Shown one piece after another: positions 75 through 9,686 of a stretch of 64,000 nt of DNA. The DNA is taken from assembly GCA_976226885.1 (NCBI GenBank), contig OZ320317.1, forward strand, positions 7,130,001-7,194,000. The letters are read 5' to 3'. Both the position numbers and the translations under genes were made by a program. How positions within the stretch are numbered: the first letter of the stretch is position 1; each line of letters starts with the position of its first letter. The notes beneath the pieces are model-generated. The model was not told the DNA's origin and searched no databases. It saw only the letters and a list, made by a program, of their open reading frames with translations. This stretch comes from Iphione sp. A-MEVVRFRX5 (taxonomy: Eukaryota).

Positions 75-1000
75 ATGTTGTGTGATTTTGACTCTCTGGC
101 CAAACTGTACTGGTTGGTCACCCAATGTATGTGTATATTGGAAAAATGTATGATGGGGTTTGTCATGTTCAGAGCTACCAACATATTTTTTTTCATGTTA
201 GGATGGTGTGTGCCTTTGTCTCTGTGGCCAACCTGTACTGGTTGGTCACCCACTGTATGTGCAAATGGCAAATATGTATGGGGGGGGGGGTTCCTGTTCA
301 GGGCCAATAATTTTTTTTTTTTTTTTTCATGTTAGGATGGTGTGTGCCTTTGTCTCTGTGGCCAACCTGTACTGGTTGGTCACCCACTGTATGTGCAAAT
401 GGCAAATATGTATGGGGGGGGGGGTTCCTGTTCAGGGCCAATAATTTTTTTTTTTTTTTTCATGTTAGGATGGTGTGTGCCTTTGTCTCTGTGGCCAACC
501 TGTACTGGTTGGTCACCCACTGTATGTGCAAATGGCAAATATGTATGGGGGGGGGGTTCCTGTTCAGGGCCAAATAATTTTTTTTTTTTTTTTTCATGTT
601 AGGATGGTGTGTGCCTTTGTCTCTGTGGCCAACCTGTACCGGTTGGTCACCCACTCTGTTTTATGCATGTGTATATAGACAACATATAATCAGGATTTGT
701 GTTATGTACATAGCAACCAACTGCTTTTAGGAACAGGTTAGGGTTTTTCTTCCTCTTAGGGTAGTGAGTGTGCTTTGTCTCTGTGGCCAACCTGTACTGG
801 TTGGTCACCCACTGTGTGTGCATAGGGCAAATATGTATGGGGGGGGGGTTCCTGTTCAGGGCTACCAATTTTTTTTTTTTTTTTCATGTTAGGATGGTGT
901 ATGTTTATTGTCTCTGTGGCCAAGCTGTACTGGTTGGTCAAACACAATGGGTGCATATGGCCAACATGTATGAAGGGTTTTGTCATGTTCAGAGCCATTT
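75..1000. repeat. ~133-bp tandem repeat, ~7 copies, with variable poly-G and poly-T tracts
   Basis: CATGTTAGGATGGTGTGTGCCTTTGTCTCTGTGGCCAACCTGTACTGGTTGGTCACCCAC recurs at ~194, 328, 461, 595 and 886, with diverged copies near 75 and 760. Confidence 0.95.
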
Positions 1001-1090
1001 TTTTGTTTCTGATTTCATGTCAGGATACTTTATGTGCACAGGAATGTTTCACTACTGCAGTGTCTGACTGTAGATTTTAATTTTTCTAGA

Positions 1091-2999
1091 ATGAAGCGGT
1101 TTGGGCTGGACCCTAAAGATCCGGCATATAATGCCAAGCGATCAAAGATGAGCAGGGAGGAGGACATTAACCGAGACCCTATAGGTACGCGCTGGAAGGC
1201 CTCGGAGGATCGGCGCGAAAGGCGGCGACTGCGCAAGATTGGTAAGTTACTGTCTTTGACCCTACAATGTATTACTCTATCCTTGTGCAGTATCAAGAGA
1301 GGGTATTGGAAAAGGGGGAAAGGATAGTATGGTACCTGATTATGTTGAGAAAAACTGCACATACCTCCTTTCCCTCCACCAAATAGCCAAGTGTATGGAC
1401 TTACATCTTGTAAAGATGATTACAGATTAAAATGAATATGTTGCTCACTACATATGATTAACCTTATATATTTCTTAAGAATAAACTTGTCTTGTGGCCT
1501 TCCTACCTGAGCTACAAAAGGAATGATTCCTATTTCCAGTATTGCAACATTGAAAATGTATTTCAGCCCGGGGTGAAGAGCCCGCGAAAGTGAAGCGCGG
1601 AAAATATGAGAGCGCGGCCGCCTTTGCATTCCGGGAGGCCCGCTACCGCGCCGACCTCCAGGTCTGGGCCCTCAGCCAGGGGGAGGGCGACACCTCCAGT
1701 GGGGAGAGCGAGGAGGAGGAGGGGCAGCATGGTAAGTTAATGTGTTGGTTCATTCTGCTTCAGTTTTTGGGGGAGGGAATTTGGAGGGGATTCCTATGTA
1801 TACTGACACTCATATCAATTATACTTGTATTGTATTAACCATAAATGGAGACACCCTGTTGCTTTGCAAACCACATTAATTGAATTCTAATATGTGTACA
1901 CCCATTTCTTTCTTGAAGGTGCCGGTAATCATGCCCTAAATGGGGCCTATGTTGCCCCTCCTCCTGCTGATGAGCAGGTGCTCCAGCCGCCCCAGGCACA
2001 GCCCCCACCACAGCAACAGCAGCAGGAGCAGCAGCAGCAGCCCCCACCACAGCAAGAACAGGAGCAGCAGCAGCAGCCCCCACCACAGCAACAACAGCAG
2101 GAGCAGCAGCAGCAGCCCCCACCACAGCAACAACAGGAGCAGCAGCAGCAGCCCCCACCACAGCAACAACAGCAGGAGCAGCAGCAGCAGCCCCCAGCAC
2201 AGCTCCTGCAGGAGGCAGCTGAGGAGGAGGAGGAGGACGACGACGACCAGCAGGAGGCTGGTAGCAATGGTAAGTTGCTGTCTAGAGTTTATGTCTTTTC
2301 AGTATGCTTGCTGTAGTCTTCGTGTATATTTCTACACATAAAGGTTTGAATGGTGGCCGTCATGTAGTACATACAGTTAAGTTTCATATGTAACTGGTTC
2401 TATAGGATATCACTTAAATTTAGCACATTTATGTGCATATCCTTCTGTAGTATTTATCAGTAATACCAAAAAACAACTCTTAAAAGTGAAGACATTTATT
2501 GTCACAAACTACCAAGCCAACTGTTACAGGCCCGCACGGCACCCCCTTGTATAAAAACCATATCCGCCGGGTCACACACACACACATGCAACCCCACATG
2601 AACACACACAAGCACTAATGCCCTATCAATATGGCCCATAATGTTGTCTTGTCCAACTCTAAAAACAAGGTTTTCCCTGTGCTTAATTTTACAGATGCAG
2701 GCAGCGCCAGGTCGTCCACCAGCGACACCACGGTCGACCTCGCTGCTGCCTACCTCGACCTGGAGGCCCGCATGGACCGCTTTGATAAGGAGGTGGTGTC
2801 CATCGGCCGGCGGCTAGATGCCCTTGAGCATCTAGCCCGCCACCGTCGCCGGCCGTTGGATGCCAACGACAAGCGCATCTTGTCGGAGCGCTTCGAGCGC
2901 ATCAAGGACAAGACCGGCCTGACCAAAAGCCAATATGAGGAAGTCGTCCTGGACGTGCTAGCTGTGGAGGGCCGTCCAGGACTTGGCCTGCCCCCATAA
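1091..2999 (+). CDS. Orphan 4-exon gene, ~323 aa: basic N-terminus, poly-Q/P and acidic middle, predicted helical C-terminus
   Basis: Exons 1091-1241, 1567-1731, 1919-2269 and 2695-2999 join in frame (972 nt). All three introns are phase 1 with TG|GTAAGTT donors and YAG/AAG acceptors. An AT-rich 3' region follows. Confidence 0.75.
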
Positions 3000-3811
3000 G
3001 GAGGGACACCAGGAGCCCCACTAGGGCCAGGACTTGTTAAAGTTGTTTACACTTGTTAACACTGTTTTTTACATATCTATTCAAGGACTTTTTACTGTTG
3101 ACTCAGGCTTGGACTTGAACCATATGGACACTTTTGGCCTTGAACAGTACCAGACTACTCACACCACTTAAATTAATTTTTTTTAACTTTCATAACTTTT
3201 TTAACATATTTTCTCTTTCAAATTAGTACTTTTAACATTTTTCTTAATCTTTAAACTTTTAATCTTTATTCTTTTAATCTTATAATTTTAAAGTTAACTT
3301 GTCATTAAATAACTTTTCACTTTCTTCACTTTTTTAACTCGTAACTTTTAATAACAAATTTCTCTGTCTTTCACTGTACTATTACATGTTCAGCACATCT
3401 GTGATATTTTGTCGTTTTTGACCCATATATAATCTGGTACTGTTATAAATTATTTTGTTCAAGCCAATGCAGGTGTTGGGATTTCTTGTTTACAGTCCTT
3501 CAAAAGGAAAATATACATGCAAGTAGGTCTAAAGTAGGTAGAGTTACCTAAGCAAGTGGCATGCTAACATATATATTAAGATATCATTGCAAATCAAGTT
3601 TACATGTTATTCTGGTTTCACAAGTTGATCAGCATGCATTCTTAAGATTAGCCTATAGTGGTTCCCCTCAATGATACACACAGGAAAAATGACGCATGAG
3701 AACACCTCTTTCAATGAAGAAGGAAATACACTAATGCCAGCAGCCTGGACAGGTAGGTATTATATCAGAGTTGCTGTGCACACATAACTTATACTTTATC
3801 TATATTTGCAG

Positions 3812-6608
3812 TTGATGATGCCAGACAGAAGTGGCGCAGCCTGCGCGACGAGATGGTGCGATGGAAGCGCCTGTCCAAAGAAGGGAAGAGCAGTGGTGCT
3901 GAGGCCAGGAAGCTGGAGACCTGGAAATTTTTCCAGGCACTTCAGTTTGTGGTGCCCACCATCACCGACCGGCCAACGCTCAGCAACTTCCCGGCACCAC
4001 GCACTGCAGCCCAGGGACCTGCACCTCGTGTCACCAGGGAGTCTCCTGTCCCTCGTGCAGCCAGCGAGTCTCCTGTTCCTCGTGCGGCCAGCGAGTCACC
4101 AGTTGTCGTGGCATCCAAAGAGCCAGAGGTGGATCTCACGGTAACACCGGAAGATGTCGAGATGCAGCCATCCACCTCCGGCGAGGTAACCCACCGTCCC
4201 CGTCGTCACAGCCCAGCTACCAGTGAGGATGACGATGTGCCTCCAGTGCCTCCCATGCCCCCACTGGTGTCATCACCGTCTGTCACAGAGGCGTAAGTAT
4301 CATTTACTGTTCCATGTCCTCTTCCTCACTGCGTACAGCCTCTTCCCTCTCTTCATCGGTACCGGGGGGGTCCGGGTCGTTGGAAGCCAACCCACGCCGT
4401 ACGTGGCGCCTTTGCCATGGTAACTCATTCAGGTTCGTGAAGAAATGCTTGAACTTTTCCCTAATGGCACAGAGGTGCCGTGCAGACCGCCTGGCAATCG
4501 CTGGGAGGGGTTCAAGTGCTCCCCTCACCTTCTCTCTCCTACTCCGTCTTGCAGCTTCGTCTGCCCTGTAGTCACGAATGAGCTTGCTCACCTGCGGTGG
4601 GGTTGTTTTCCTCTGTAGCATGTTATGGAGTATCACTGTTGCCATCACAACTTCAGGCAGGGTGTTGGCATCAATTATGATCTTTCTGTGATAGATTCTC
4701 CATCGGGTCGCCAAGATGCCAAAAGTGCATTCCACTATCCGCCGGGCCCGTGAGTGCCGGTAGTTATAGGTACGCTCCGCTGGGGTGTTTCCGAGTCCTG
4801 GGTAAGGTCGCATGAGGTGATACAGCATGGGGAAGGCGGCATCACCTACAAAGACATAGGGCATAGGCCCTAGTACTTCGGCCCCTTGTAATGGCTTGTC
4901 CTCAGGCAAGTCGAGGTGATCCTCTTCAAGTGCCTGGCCAAAGGGACACTGGTGGAAGATGCTGGCGTCACTCTTCCGGCCATATGAGCCCACCTCTACA
5001 TACAAGAATTGGTAGTTAGCATCCACCACCGCAAACAACACTTGGCTGAAATACCCCTTATAGTTGTAGTAAAGCGATCCTGACCGGCCTGGGGCATAGC
5101 GCATGACATGTTTTCCATCTATCGCACCGAGGCAGTTGGGGTAGTTCCACCTCTTCTCAAAGTTGGCTGCTATTAGCTTCCATTCGTCAGCAGTGGTTGG
5201 CATCTTCACGAATTCATGAAGGAGGTGTGTGCGTATGGCCACGGCCACTTCCTTCACGATGCGACTGACAGTGTTGAATCCCAGCCTGAAGTAGAGTGAC
5301 AAGCTTACCATTGACTCCCCCGTAGCTATGTACCTGAGAAAGTAAACAAAAAGTTACCATGAGATTACTAGAAAATACTTATGCAAGAACGAGTGGGTCA
5401 CATTCACTTTTTGCTAACAATAAAATTTCTATGTTTGCAGGTTGCAGTTGTCGAGTAACAAAAGACCGGCATCGACCACCCCTGATGAGGACCTGGCTGC
5501 CATGATGAAGGGGAAAGCAGTGACAGTCAAGGAGAAGGCGGCAGTGAAACGGCGGCGCAAGACCACAACCACAGCCACCACACCTGCTGCTCCCACCGCA
5601 CCCGCCACAGATGCAGCTGCTGATGACACCGCGCCTGGGCAACCAGTGGAAACCGAGTTGCAGGGCTTCCTGAAAGCCATGAGAGCCGATCTGCGCACCG
5701 AGCAGGAGAGATTGACTGTCACTGTCCGTGCACTGGCAGGAGACATAGACAGTTCGTCGCGCACCAAGTCCATGCGCAACTTCTGCCTGTCCCTAGTGCA
5801 GGACCTGCTGGACCTCCCTCCACAGAAGGCGGCTGTTGCACAGGCGGCCATCAAGACGGTGCTGCACAACCTGGCATTCCCCCAGGAACCACTGCCCATT
5901 GCAGGTGTCCCTATGCCAGGTGCACAAGCAGCAGCTGCACCTGCCTTCGTCCACCCTCCCGCTGCCCCTGCTTTTCCTCAGCCTCCTCCTGCCCCTACTG
6001 TTCCCCAGCCTCCCGCTTTTCAGCCCCCTGCTGCTGTCCCGCCTCCCGCTGTCCTGCCCCATGCCGACCCTACTGTTCCCCAGCCTCCCGCTTTTCAGCC
6101 CCCTGCTGCTGTCCCGCCTCCCGCTGTCCTGCCCCATGCCGACCCTACTGTTCCCCAGCCTTCCGCTTTTCAGCCCCCTGCTGCTGTCCCGCCTCCCGCT
6201 GTCCCGCCTCCCCCCGTCCCGCCCCATGCTGACCCCACTGTGGCCCAGCCTCATGCTGCACCAGCTCAAGAGCTGCTGCCTTTATTGGCACCCGAGCTGA
6301 TGCCGGATGCCATTGCAGAGGTGCTGGATGATGAGCCTGACAAGCTGCCGGTTACAAGGGGGAGGAGGAAGAGGGGTGCCTCCACTACAGCAAAGGCCAC
6401 AAAATCTAGGAGGGGTGGCAAGAAGGGGGCGGCCAAACAAGCACCACCCAAGCAAGCAGAACAGTGGGAGGTCCCTGCACCAGATGCAGGACCCCTGGGA
6501 CCACTGGCCCCGGAGGCAGTACCAGTGGTACCAGTGGCAGGGGAGCGGCCGTCTCTGTTTGAGTTCTTAACTCAGGCTGAAGAGACACTACTTGGTGGGC
6601 AGCACTGA
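3812..6608 (+). CDS. Harbinger-associated MADF (Myb/SANT-like) protein with a BESS-like motif and Pro/Ala repeats; 5' end unresolved
   Basis: Exon 3812-4292 encodes DDARQKWRSLRD...KSSG...WKFFQALQFV (C-terminal half of MADF). Donor GC|GTAAGT at 4293 and acceptor TTTGCAG at 5440 (CTAAC at 5414) splice in frame into ORF 5442-6608. That ORF has NFCLSLVQDLLDLPPQKAAVAQAAIKTVLHNL (BESS-like) and ~3 copies of a 75-bp repeat. Confidence 0.75.
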
Positions 6609-7361
6609 AACAGCTGTTGAACTCTTCATTTTAATCCTTTTCTATTGACTCTGATTTTAATCATAATTCATATTTCTTTTCAGGTATCTAGCTTTTTAAT
6701 GAACTTTTCTTCTCATACTGTTTTAAAATGTTTCTTATGTCTTTTCTTTCAGATGTAACTTGTCTACTATTTTTTAAAATGCTTGATAATATTTAATCAT
6801 GTTTTATCCAGGATATATATGCATATTTTAATATACTGTCTTTATCTTTGAATAAATATTATTTCTTCTAGGAAATTCATGTGTTTTCCATTGGGGATAA
6901 GGGATGTACATAAATTTATAATGCTAATGATAACAGATCTTATACTTGTATAGTACAGATATAGCAACATCACCAACAGTAAGAGAGTATAAAGCAGTGA
7001 GTGAGTAATTCAAGACTTACCTCAGGAACACGCTGAGCCGTTCACGGGGTGAGATGGCTTCCCTTGTCCGGCTGATCCGTTCAAGATCTCCCTCGATCTT
7101 GGAGAGGATGAAATTGAAATCAGCAATGCTCATCCGGAAGAGCTTGTGGCACAGCCACTCATTACGCATGGCCTCTTGCACCAAGTGGTGGTACAGACCA
7201 AATGTCGGTCGCAGCTGCCATACCGGATTCACCCAGAACTGCCGTCCACGGTGGCGCCACAGATGGTCAAACTCCATGCACATCAGGTACCGCCTTAGCA
7301 TGCTCAGGCACTGGTATTGTTGCAGCACCAGGATGCATGCAACTGCTTCTTCTGGCTCCAT
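4304..7361 (-). CDS. PIF/Harbinger DDE transposase (HARBI1-like), ~456 aa, 2 coding exons
   Basis: Exon 7361-7021 (AG|GTAAGT) and exon 5333-4304 (TTTTCTCAG acceptor) join as SVFLR|YIATGES. Motifs GAIDGKHV, YNYKGYFS..L.AVVDANY, VGDAAFP and RARRIVECTFGILATRWRI are present; the DDE residues look intact. Confidence 0.93.
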
Positions 7362-7418
7362 GATGAACTGAAAAAAATACAACAGTGAGTGCATATGTCA
7401 GGGGTGAAAATTACGCTG

Positions 7419-7790
7419 TAGCATGGACGTCTCAATGTCCGATCACCAGAGACAGCAGTGAGTGGACACACCAATGCATAGCGATCGCACATACATATCA
7501 CCGCGACGTAGTCCCAGGGTCCCGAGACGACAGTGATCGGACACACCAAAGTCGCTCATTAAACTTATATTGATCAAACATACATTCCAATATACATACA
7601 ATAGCATCGCCTCTACATATACACAGTAGCGTGGACGTCTCAGTGTCCGATCACCAGAGACAGCAGTGAGTGGACACACCAATGCATAGCGATCGCACAT
7701 ACATAGCATCACCTCTACATACGCAGTTCTTTAGACACACGAAAATCCGCTCATTAAACGGTTTTACATTGATCGGACATACAGGAGTCC
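7419..7790. repeat. Subterminal/promoter repeats of the Harbinger element
   Basis: A ~78-bp direct repeat at ~7419-7497 and ~7627-7705. The motif TGTCCGATCA occurs in both orientations (~7436 and 7644 forward; ~7535 and 7769 reverse). Confidence 0.8.
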
Positions 7791-9686
7791 ACGCTTGAAA
7801 CATTTATGCTTAATATTTACCACTATTTTTCATGCTAGACTAGTCATTTCAGCTGTAAACATACCTTTTGCCTGGACCTTTAAATTTGTGCCTTCTTCCA
7901 CGTGCTCGGACGGGGTCATGACCGAGCAATTTCCGGGTTGGACATACGCAAGTCCACGCGGAAAATTCGCGTGCATGGGGATAGACCCCGCCACCTCATG
8001 CAGGACGGTGCGGGAAGTCCGCACCACGCCACCTTGTGCGTGCGGACAATTCGCGTCTATGGGGATAGCGCTTAATTGTTCCAGTAGGACAAAAATCAGG
8101 GTCGGTCGGGTTACCGGAAACAGATAGTGTTTGTGCAAGGCTAAGAGCATTAGTTATCTGCTTTCCAGGCATAGGTACTGTGTGTTAGTTATACATGTAC
8201 ATCAAAATGAGTGATCTTATCAAACTAACATAAATTAGTCATCATGACTGAAGAATTTTCATTTCTAGGAAATATGTTACTAATAAATCAGTCGATTTTA
8301 CCATCTGAATATAGTCTATCATATAATCGCAAGTAATTATCTGATTTGGATGCAGCAAATGGCTAGAGAAAGCTTACAGCCTGTTCAAAGACGCTATATA
8401 GAAAAAAATATATAGCACAACATCCTAATCATGATGTGCCATCTTTCAAGAATGGTGGAGCAGGAAAATGTTTTATTGATCTCCTCATTAAAAAGTTCCA
8501 CAAGTAGATTAGTCATAAGCAGCTAGCAACTTAGTCTCAGAACTGGTCATTATGACTTTTTTCATCAAGTCTACCTGAAGACAGTCACTAGTAACTAAGT
8601 TTCCAAGAGCCCAGATTGTAGTACTAATTATGATAGGAAAATGTATCATTATAAATAAGGTTCCTTAAGTGCTGTGAAAAATATATAGTGTACAGTTATG
8701 TTAACTAAAGCCTTGAAGTACTTGTGAGTGTGCAAACAAATCTTTTCATCTAAAGTACTTATGTTTTTTGGAATCAGCTAAAGTGGAAACATTTCCTGTA
8801 GAACAGTGTAACAACATTGTTTCTTCATATTGAGTTGCATGTGAACAAGGTAGTTCTTATCATCTCCATCTTCCAGGGTACCCTGGATACTTGGCACTGT
8901 GTCATTATGAGGGTAAAACATATGAAAATTATTGTTCGACTACCTTAAATCAATTATTCTATCCAGATCATGTGATATTTGTGCACATAGTTTGTCAAAG
9001 GGATTTGAATAAATATGAGAGTTGCTCCAACATTCTCATTGGACTCACCTGCACCAACACTGATGCTGTACCATGAAGCTGTGAAGAGTAAAACCTGATA
9101 ATCGGACCTACTGGTGTAGTGTACTCTTTACTGTTACAAGGTTATCAGTGACATACAAAGCTGAAATAATATTGGTTATTATTTCATTGGTGGGTTACAG
9201 ATTGAAATGTCACTATTCCGTTATTATGGTATTCCCCTACCCTTGCTGTTAAAAACACAATGCCCTGGAAGTGAATTGTTTCTCTGGAAGGGGTGAATTT
9301 AGTAAGGAAAAAACGGAAATAGCATTCTGTTATGTCTTGACAGTATTTTGAGATGTTTACTAACTTTCTTTAATGTTTTCATTAATATTGTGCAAACATC
9401 TAAGGAAATATTCTGAAGAAATTTCCGTAAATACATCATCATGACATTATTAAAACACTGTGAAAACATCGTTTCCAATATTATTAGCATAATTTTTGGA
9501 AAAGGTTAGGAAAACATGTACATGTATTTGATTGGTTTTTACTTTAATGCTCATTGCATACATAAATATGGAATATCACTACTGGGAAAATCTGTGTGTA
9601 ATGTTTGAACGATTCCAAGACGTAATTTAAAAGAAATGGAATTGCAAACTGAACATGAATATATTATTGTTTTTTTTTTTTTTTTA

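Follow-up and report, generated by a model that had tools for sequence, protein, structure and literature searches.

Transposase and MADF-BESS genes nested in each other's introns in a probable PIF/Harbinger-type copy from Iphione sp.

The 64,000-nucleotide stretch of Iphione sp. A-MEVVRFRX5 DNA considered here (positions 7,130,001 to 7,194,000 of contig OZ320317.1; hereafter the window) probably contains a PIF/Harbinger-type copy from a lineage in which the two genes of the element are mutually nested on opposite strands. Harbinger elements are textbook DNA transposons that require two proteins, a transposase and a Myb/MADF-type protein that binds subterminal DNA and recruits the transposase. 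Such elements raise the question of how the two genes stay linked and in balance; in the lineage described here they appear to be locked into each other. The transposase gene, on the minus strand, would consist of two coding exons separated by a single phase-2 intron that contains the last exon of the partner gene. This second gene, on the plus strand, would encode a MADF domain followed by an acidic linker and, at the C-terminus, a BESS-like region, and its last intron, also of phase 2, would house the catalytic exon of the transposase, each mRNA being made by splicing away the exon of the other gene. The window copy shows all of the features by which this interleaved lineage is recognized, namely a BESS exon in the transposase intron, a catalytic exon in the last MADF-BESS intron and phase 2 for both introns. 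Of the hallmarks of PIF/Harbinger membership, a transposase with a DDE_Tnp_4 domain and an intact DDE triad is present; terminal inverted repeats (TIRs) and a target-site duplication (TSD) were not found in the window.

Coding blocks and splice sites of the window copy

Four coding blocks lie on alternating strands (+, -, +, -) at 3812-4292, 4304-5333, 5441-6608 and 7021-7361, with a G+C content of 53-62% compared with 27-33% in the AT-rich spacers between them. Only one copy of the element occurs within the 64-kb window. An earlier reading of the stretch made without database searches (the sequence-only reading) had placed four exons at these positions, and all of them were recovered from open reading frames (ORFs), Pfam matches and tblastn.

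On the plus strand, the MADF exon (3812-4292) is open throughout its frame and appears to be followed at once by a stop, the TAA at 4294-4296. This triplet falls inside a consensus donor, GTAAGT. The donor GC/GTAAGT at 4292/4293 and the acceptor tttgcag/G at 5440/5441 are both of phase 2 and in frame, and a base-by-base check bears out the earlier proposal that the apparent stop conceals a splice site, the acceptor restoring the frame. The spliced plus-strand frame comprises 550 codons and is free of stops. The intron between these sites (4293-5440; 1148 nt) encloses the entire catalytic exon of the transposase on the opposite strand, the MADF donor lying ten bases from the transposase stop codon (4304-4306).

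On the minus strand, a canonical donor, CTGAG/GTAAGT at 7021/7020, and acceptor, ctcag/G at 5334/5333, delimit the single transposase intron (5334-7020; 1687 nt), which is of phase 2 and splits an Arg codon directly 5' of the YIATGES motif. The whole of the BESS-like exon lies within this intron, as the sequence-only reading had it, together with the 3' flank of that exon. Two NCBI transposase models, P0009 (Haliotis) and P0022 (Holothuria), likewise consist of two exons and use the equivalent intron, that is, the interval containing the opposite-strand BESS exon. The 107-nt AT-rich spacer at 5334-5440 carries two 3' splice sites back to back, one on each strand; its equivalents in the related loci described below (L001-L004 and L006) measure ~70-270 nt. 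The first AATAAA past the MADF-BESS stop was located by a motif scan at 6851-6856 on the plus strand, inside the transposase intron and upstream of transposase exon 1, and is a candidate poly(A) signal for the MADF-BESS gene.

Pfam comparison of the two predicted proteins, which the sequence-only reading had proposed as a check, bore out the transposase in full: 4304-5333 matches DDE_Tnp_4 (PF13359) across the entire profile with E = 1.5e-28, and all three residues of the catalytic triad (D186, D278 and E315) could be located. The spliced transposase comprises 456 residues in an intact reading frame and aligns across the exon junction, from residue ~36-40 to ~428, with annotated proteins of 390-422 residues from Nucella, Haliotis and Holothuria. 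The catalytic exon has 1042 homologues, the best of which are only 48-55% identical; the window protein is therefore not itself in the databases, and an exact look-up of its ORF found no record. The first exon (7021-7361), which contributes 113 codons and two bases, was recognized from its ORF and from tblastn homology to the transposase N-terminal exons of L001, L002, L003, L004 and L006. Translation likely starts at the ATG at 7361-7359, and an acceptor-like tttttttcag just upstream of 7361 suggests a further exon in the 5' untranslated region (UTR).

For the MADF-BESS protein the Pfam check succeeded only in part, with the C-terminal half of MADF and a divergent BESS motif being recovered. 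The exon at 3812-4292 matches positions 43-83 of the 84-position MADF_DNA_bdg profile (E = 9.7e-4, 19.9 bits; the cut-off is 22 bits). It is entered via a phase-1 acceptor, tttgcag/TT at 3811/3812, and left via the phase-2 donor; its G+C content is 61%, and the encoded segment runs from the C-terminal half of the MADF domain through a Ser/Pro-rich stretch to an acidic tail. Its product is 45% identical to Gigantopelta LOC121390400 isoform X1, the stretch past the domain included. The Ser/Pro-rich linker is lengthened by a 27-bp in-frame repeat present three times at 4018-4097 (87% identity).

The last exon of the gene (5441-6608; ORF 5442-6608, 388 codons, stop codon 6606-6608) has a G+C content of 62.5%, compared with 27-32% in its flanks, and encodes a basic stretch resembling a nuclear localization signal, a short helical stretch, a BESS-like motif, a proline-rich region and a basic/acidic tail. 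The motif lies at ~5769-5834, corresponding to residues ~110-131 of the ORF. Against the Pfam BESS profile it gives E = 0.22, below any curated threshold. Comparison of the exon with a ten-member family alignment using hhalign gave P = 0.0016, with the BESS motif and the P-x-LPI stretch that follows it aligned, and the top matches in the ESM Atlas were BESS or MADF-BESS clusters (0.89), which counts as a lead only. The BESS signal is weak but consistent across Pfam, hhalign and the Atlas. The window exon also aligns with the BESS exons of the other loci. Its proline-rich linker is lengthened by a 75-bp in-frame tandem repeat (2.9 copies, 98% identity) at 5993-6208; both this repeat and the 27-bp repeat of the MADF exon are young.

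The same layout in related loci and its relation to known systems

The DNA around six transposase homologues was retrieved, and five of these loci share the four-block order and strands: L001 and L002 (ENA assemblies), L003 (Haliotis asinina), L004 (Holothuria leucospilota) and L006 (Gigantopelta aegis). Their transposases are ~47-54% identical to that of the window. In each, the same phase-2 transposase intron precedes a (Y/F)LATGES motif and contains a minus-strand exon consisting of a basic stretch and a BESS-type motif, and the MADF exons sit on the minus strand past the transposase stop. For the introns predicted in the sequence-only reading, the comparison with related species is thus favourable, with order, strands and the phase-2 intron kept in all five.

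A phase-2 donor precedes the transposase exon in four of the loci (CA/GTTAGT in L001, AT/GTAAGC in L002, AG/GTGATT in L003 and AG/GTGGGT in L004), at 360, 48, 11 and ~540 nt from the transposase stop, respectively, the corresponding distance in the window being 10 nt; L002, like the window, also carries a stop codon inside the donor. The BESS exon opens with a phase-2 acceptor in L001, L003, L004 and L006, and does so in the decayed copy L002 too after a frameshift is allowed for. The acidic exon of L006 is decayed. The BESS exon of L004 has no Met upstream of the motif and therefore cannot be an ORF in its own right. In L001, L003 and the Babylonia locus L007 (see below), a phase-1 intron interrupts the MADF domain at the place that corresponds to the window acceptor at 3811/3812. 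The MADF N-terminal halves of L001 (32.9 bits) and L003 (31.9 bits) exceed the Pfam cut-off, and Pfam recognizes the BESS motif of L003 with E = 9.6e-4. Between L002 and L006 the BESS exons match with E = 8e-19. Since the alternating layout recurs in five divergent loci, it is more than chance; as far as these comparisons go, it is a conserved gene arrangement and not an accident of the window copy. Gastropods and a sea cucumber share this locking of the two genes at ~50% protein identity, which makes the lineage a natural system for study.

L001 is a complete element of 4.7 kb (4859-9602) in which all exons of both genes are open. Both genes are enclosed by TIRs that are perfect over 20 bp (4859-4878 and 9583-9602) and 82% identical over 51 nt overall, with TTA and TAA flanks, and GCGTTTCCGC motifs are repeated subterminally, close to both ends. 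It is the best reference copy of the interleaved lineage. The designation of the window locus as a Harbinger element, made in the sequence-only reading, is supported by the DDE triad and by the TIRs of this relative; the window itself supplied neither TIRs nor a TSD.

In the gene tables of L003, L004, L005 (a fish locus discussed below) and L006, only the transposase is annotated, the opposite-strand MADF-BESS gene being unannotated in all four. MADF-BESS genes of this element type are accordingly under-annotated.

When the whole BESS ORF was used as a query no homologue was found at E <= 0.001, the search probably being swamped by proline-rich words. A profile built from five BESS exons gave 73 matches among 1.84 billion representative proteins. 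Proteins that combine a full N-terminal MADF domain with the matched C-terminal region include those of Aplysia californica (LOC101850874), Babylonia areolata (LOC143274803), Solemya velum and Capitella teleta, and Pfam identifies full MADF domains in the homologues P0135, P0144 and P0147. Pomacea canaliculata LOC112563697 and Gigantopelta LOC121390400 isoform X1 also match, but with only the C-terminal half of MADF according to Pfam. The Aplysia gene has two isoforms that are eight residues apart exactly at the junction of exons 3 and 4. In L003, L004 and L006, the N- and C-terminal parts of these single MADF-BESS polypeptides map to either side of the transposase catalytic exon.

The gastropod MADF-BESS proteins (Aplysia, Babylonia, Pomacea and Gigantopelta) share the domain order proposed for the window gene, and their C-terminal exon is homologous to the nested BESS exon. 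Babylonia LOC143274803 (L007, 6001-11212) comprises four exons whose boundaries coincide, in the protein, with those of L001. It differs in its setting, however, being flanked by a host SRR1 gene and a kinase gene, and no transposase remnant was found in its 1.6-kb last intron even at E = 50. This gene is likely to be a domesticated descendant of the element, and host MADF-BESS genes such as this one can now be traced to the element type via their exon structure.

The gastropod proteins P0135, P0147 and P0188 and the sea cucumber locus L004 (10070-10234) share the motif LQI(S/T)QLF(F/V)NAENP in the BESS region. Over 55 residues of this region the Pomacea protein is 64% identical to L004, whereas the remainder is far more diverged. 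Such similarity between gastropod and sea cucumber sequences suggests either strong constraint or horizontal transfer.

The sixth locus, L005 from the fish Onychostoma macrolepis (LOC131538482), falls in the same transposase clade; its transposase exon 2 can be aligned as two segments (54% and 34% identity), and a phase-2 intron lies at the same Arg/YLATG position, its position and phase being identical to those in L001, L003 and L004. A convergent MADF gene with a BESS-like motif is also present. Unlike the interleaved loci, however, L005 has a transposase intron of only ~200 nt, and a single exon lying entirely past the transposase stop contains the C-terminal half of MADF and the BESS motif, so that the genes are arranged tail to tail. 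Because this relative has a plain convergent layout, interleaving is not general; on the loci compared, it is a feature of one lineage (Mollusca, Echinodermata and the window organism) and not of all relatives.

Canonical PIF/Harbinger elements (plant PIF/Pong, Medicago MtPH and zebrafish Harbinger3_DR) resemble the interleaved lineage in pairing a DDE_Tnp_4 transposase with a Myb/SANT/MADF-type protein, and also in the TIRs and TWA-type flanks seen in L001. In the published descriptions consulted, the genes are separate units of variable order and orientation (PMC2213677), neither having an exon inside the other. In insects a PIF transposase and a MADF protein have been co-domesticated (Anopheles APLG and APM) and are physically adjacent or fused in one transcript (PMC9710019). 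APLG/APM and the vertebrate pair HARBI1/NAIF1 are alike in that both Harbinger proteins have been retained together; they differ in not being mutually nested on opposite strands, and the hallmarks of a transposable element are absent from them by definition. Adf-1-type MADF-BESS proteins of insects have the N-terminal MADF and C-terminal BESS of the window's gene family, but are host regulators without a linked transposase, and the window BESS motif is far more divergent than theirs. Complete N-terminal MADF domains are characteristic of the Adf-1 type, whereas the window copy retains profile positions 43-83 only.

The sequence-only reading suggested that the interlocked layout might not have been described for Harbingers. 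No mention of an exon of either gene within an intron of the other was found in the Harbinger literature searched, which did not cover Repbase and Dfam, and curated consensus entries in these databases may already show the layout.

Competing readings and a possible mechanism

Several observations weigh against a mutually nested PIF/Harbinger-type copy. The splicing of the window copy was deduced from sequence comparison, not from transcripts of the source organism, and the RNA-supported models of Aplysia and Gigantopelta were compared as proteins, not at their own genomic loci. The BESS motif is weak and divergent. An N-terminal MADF exon was not found in a search of the whole window, and when 1000-3811 was searched with four MADF N-terminal halves using tblastn the best match had E = 0.9. 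Neither TIRs nor a TSD were detected in the window by seed extension, blastn with a word size of 7 or local alignment with a shuffle control, the best TIR candidate scoring 29, whereas shuffled sequences averaged 22 and reached up to 35. Most of the copies examined are, moreover, decaying, with frameshifts or stops interrupting the MADF side of L002, L003 and L006.

The lack of TIRs and a TSD also bears on the possibility that the window holds not a mobile copy but a domesticated pair of host genes derived from such an element, the layout having been kept since the host uses both proteins. The two long intact reading frames would fit this explanation, as would the Babylonia gene, which lies between host genes with no transposase left, and the co-domestication of PIF transposase and MADF known in insects (PMC9710019). 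Yet the MADF N-terminal half is missing in the window copy; the 75-bp in-frame repeats, at 98% identity, are very young and, like the neighbouring satellite, point to a lack of long-term constraint; and L001, which is closely related, is a genuine TIR-bearing element. We therefore consider domestication of the window pair to be quite improbable.

A second explanation invokes three genes, with the MADF gene ending at the TAA at 4294-4296 and ORF 5442-6608 being independent or untranslated and merely situated inside the transposase intron. An in-frame ATG at about codon 21-22 of this ORF could serve as a start, and the ORF alone as a query finds no homologue at E <= 0.001. In all five other loci, however, a phase-2 acceptor marks the start of the homologous exon, and four of the loci also have a phase-2 donor ahead of it; the L004 exon is without a Met before the motif, and related annotated proteins carry MADF and the BESS region in one chain. 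Taken together, these observations leave the three-gene explanation with little more than a slight chance of being correct. An artefact, whether of two nested or rearranged remnants of Harbinger copies or of ORFs arising by chance in G+C-rich repeats, is effectively refuted by sequence comparison, since six loci from at least four species show the same order of the four blocks, per-block protein similarity reaches E = 8e-19 (the BESS exon, L002 versus L006) and one TIR pair encloses the whole set in L001, even though the proline-rich tandem repeats of the BESS exon give 150-residue ORFs in other frames too.

In the mutually nested PIF/Harbinger-type copy that we favour, each pre-mRNA would be antisense to the other across the whole interval. 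A motif scan of the minus strand found no AATAAA or ATTAAA from the transposase stop (4304) to 3352, and the 3' UTR of the window transposase would therefore have to cross the 481-nt MADF exon. L001 has a spacer of 360 nt between the transposase stop and the MADF exon, so that overlap of the mature mRNAs is not constant in the lineage. By analogy with other Harbinger elements, the MADF protein would bind subterminal repeats and recruit the transposase, perhaps via its C-terminal BESS-like region.

The sequence-only reading had proposed that expression of the two genes may be coupled through transcriptional interference or double-stranded RNA. Mutual nesting might itself have been selected as a control circuit built into this transposon lineage, in which case the conservation of the layout across molluscs and an echinoderm would reflect function and not mere linkage. 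If convergent transcription runs through the exons of both genes, the two mRNAs would come to depend on each other's splicing and double-stranded RNA would form; the element could in this way adjust the proportion of its two proteins or use small RNAs to hold its own activity in check. We regard such a circuit as unlikely. The arrangement allows one to ask whether the outputs of the two genes are tied to each other by antisense transcription, splicing and small RNAs, what prevents internal deletions from giving transposase-only or MADF-only derivatives, and by what route interleaving developed out of the simple convergent arrangement that the fish relative still shows.

Ends and surroundings of the window copy

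One end of the element may lie outside the window or have been lost. Since the first MADF exon and recognizable TIRs are absent within the window, the copy is probably truncated or interrupted on the MADF side. Two candidates for the missing exon were considered on the plus strand. The segment 3640-3753 was rejected as the MADF N-terminal half, as it has an in-frame TAG and is without the conserved W. A doubtful exon at 3661-3753, with a phase-1 donor ACAG/GTAGGT, has stop codons directly upstream, does not significantly resemble MADF N-terminal halves and probably does not belong to a functional gene.

A satellite array occupies 75-997 (134-bp unit, 6.6 copies, 79% matches; it is also scored as a 267-bp period) and may mark where the MADF-side end of the element was lost. 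It lies directly upstream of plus-strand ORFs at 1091-2999, which encode a polyglutamine/acidic stretch (1894-2316, with 39/75-bp repeats) and a coiled-coil segment (2631-2999) and belong to no Pfam family.

On the other side, preceding the transposase start, lies a pair of 86-bp direct repeats (7412-7497 and 7620-7705; 95% identity), and a repeat search identified an inverted partial copy of 26 nt at 7770-7795. Further GTCCACGC / GTCCGCAC motifs occur past the 86-bp repeats, to ~8050. Given the analogy with the GCGTTTCCGC subterminal repeats of L001, the repeats at 7412-7795 and the nearby motifs may be candidate subterminal binding sites. Farther along the window, a CHD7-like chromodomain helicase gene occupies 33951-52915 on the minus strand, the best matches of one of its conserved exons being 84% identical.

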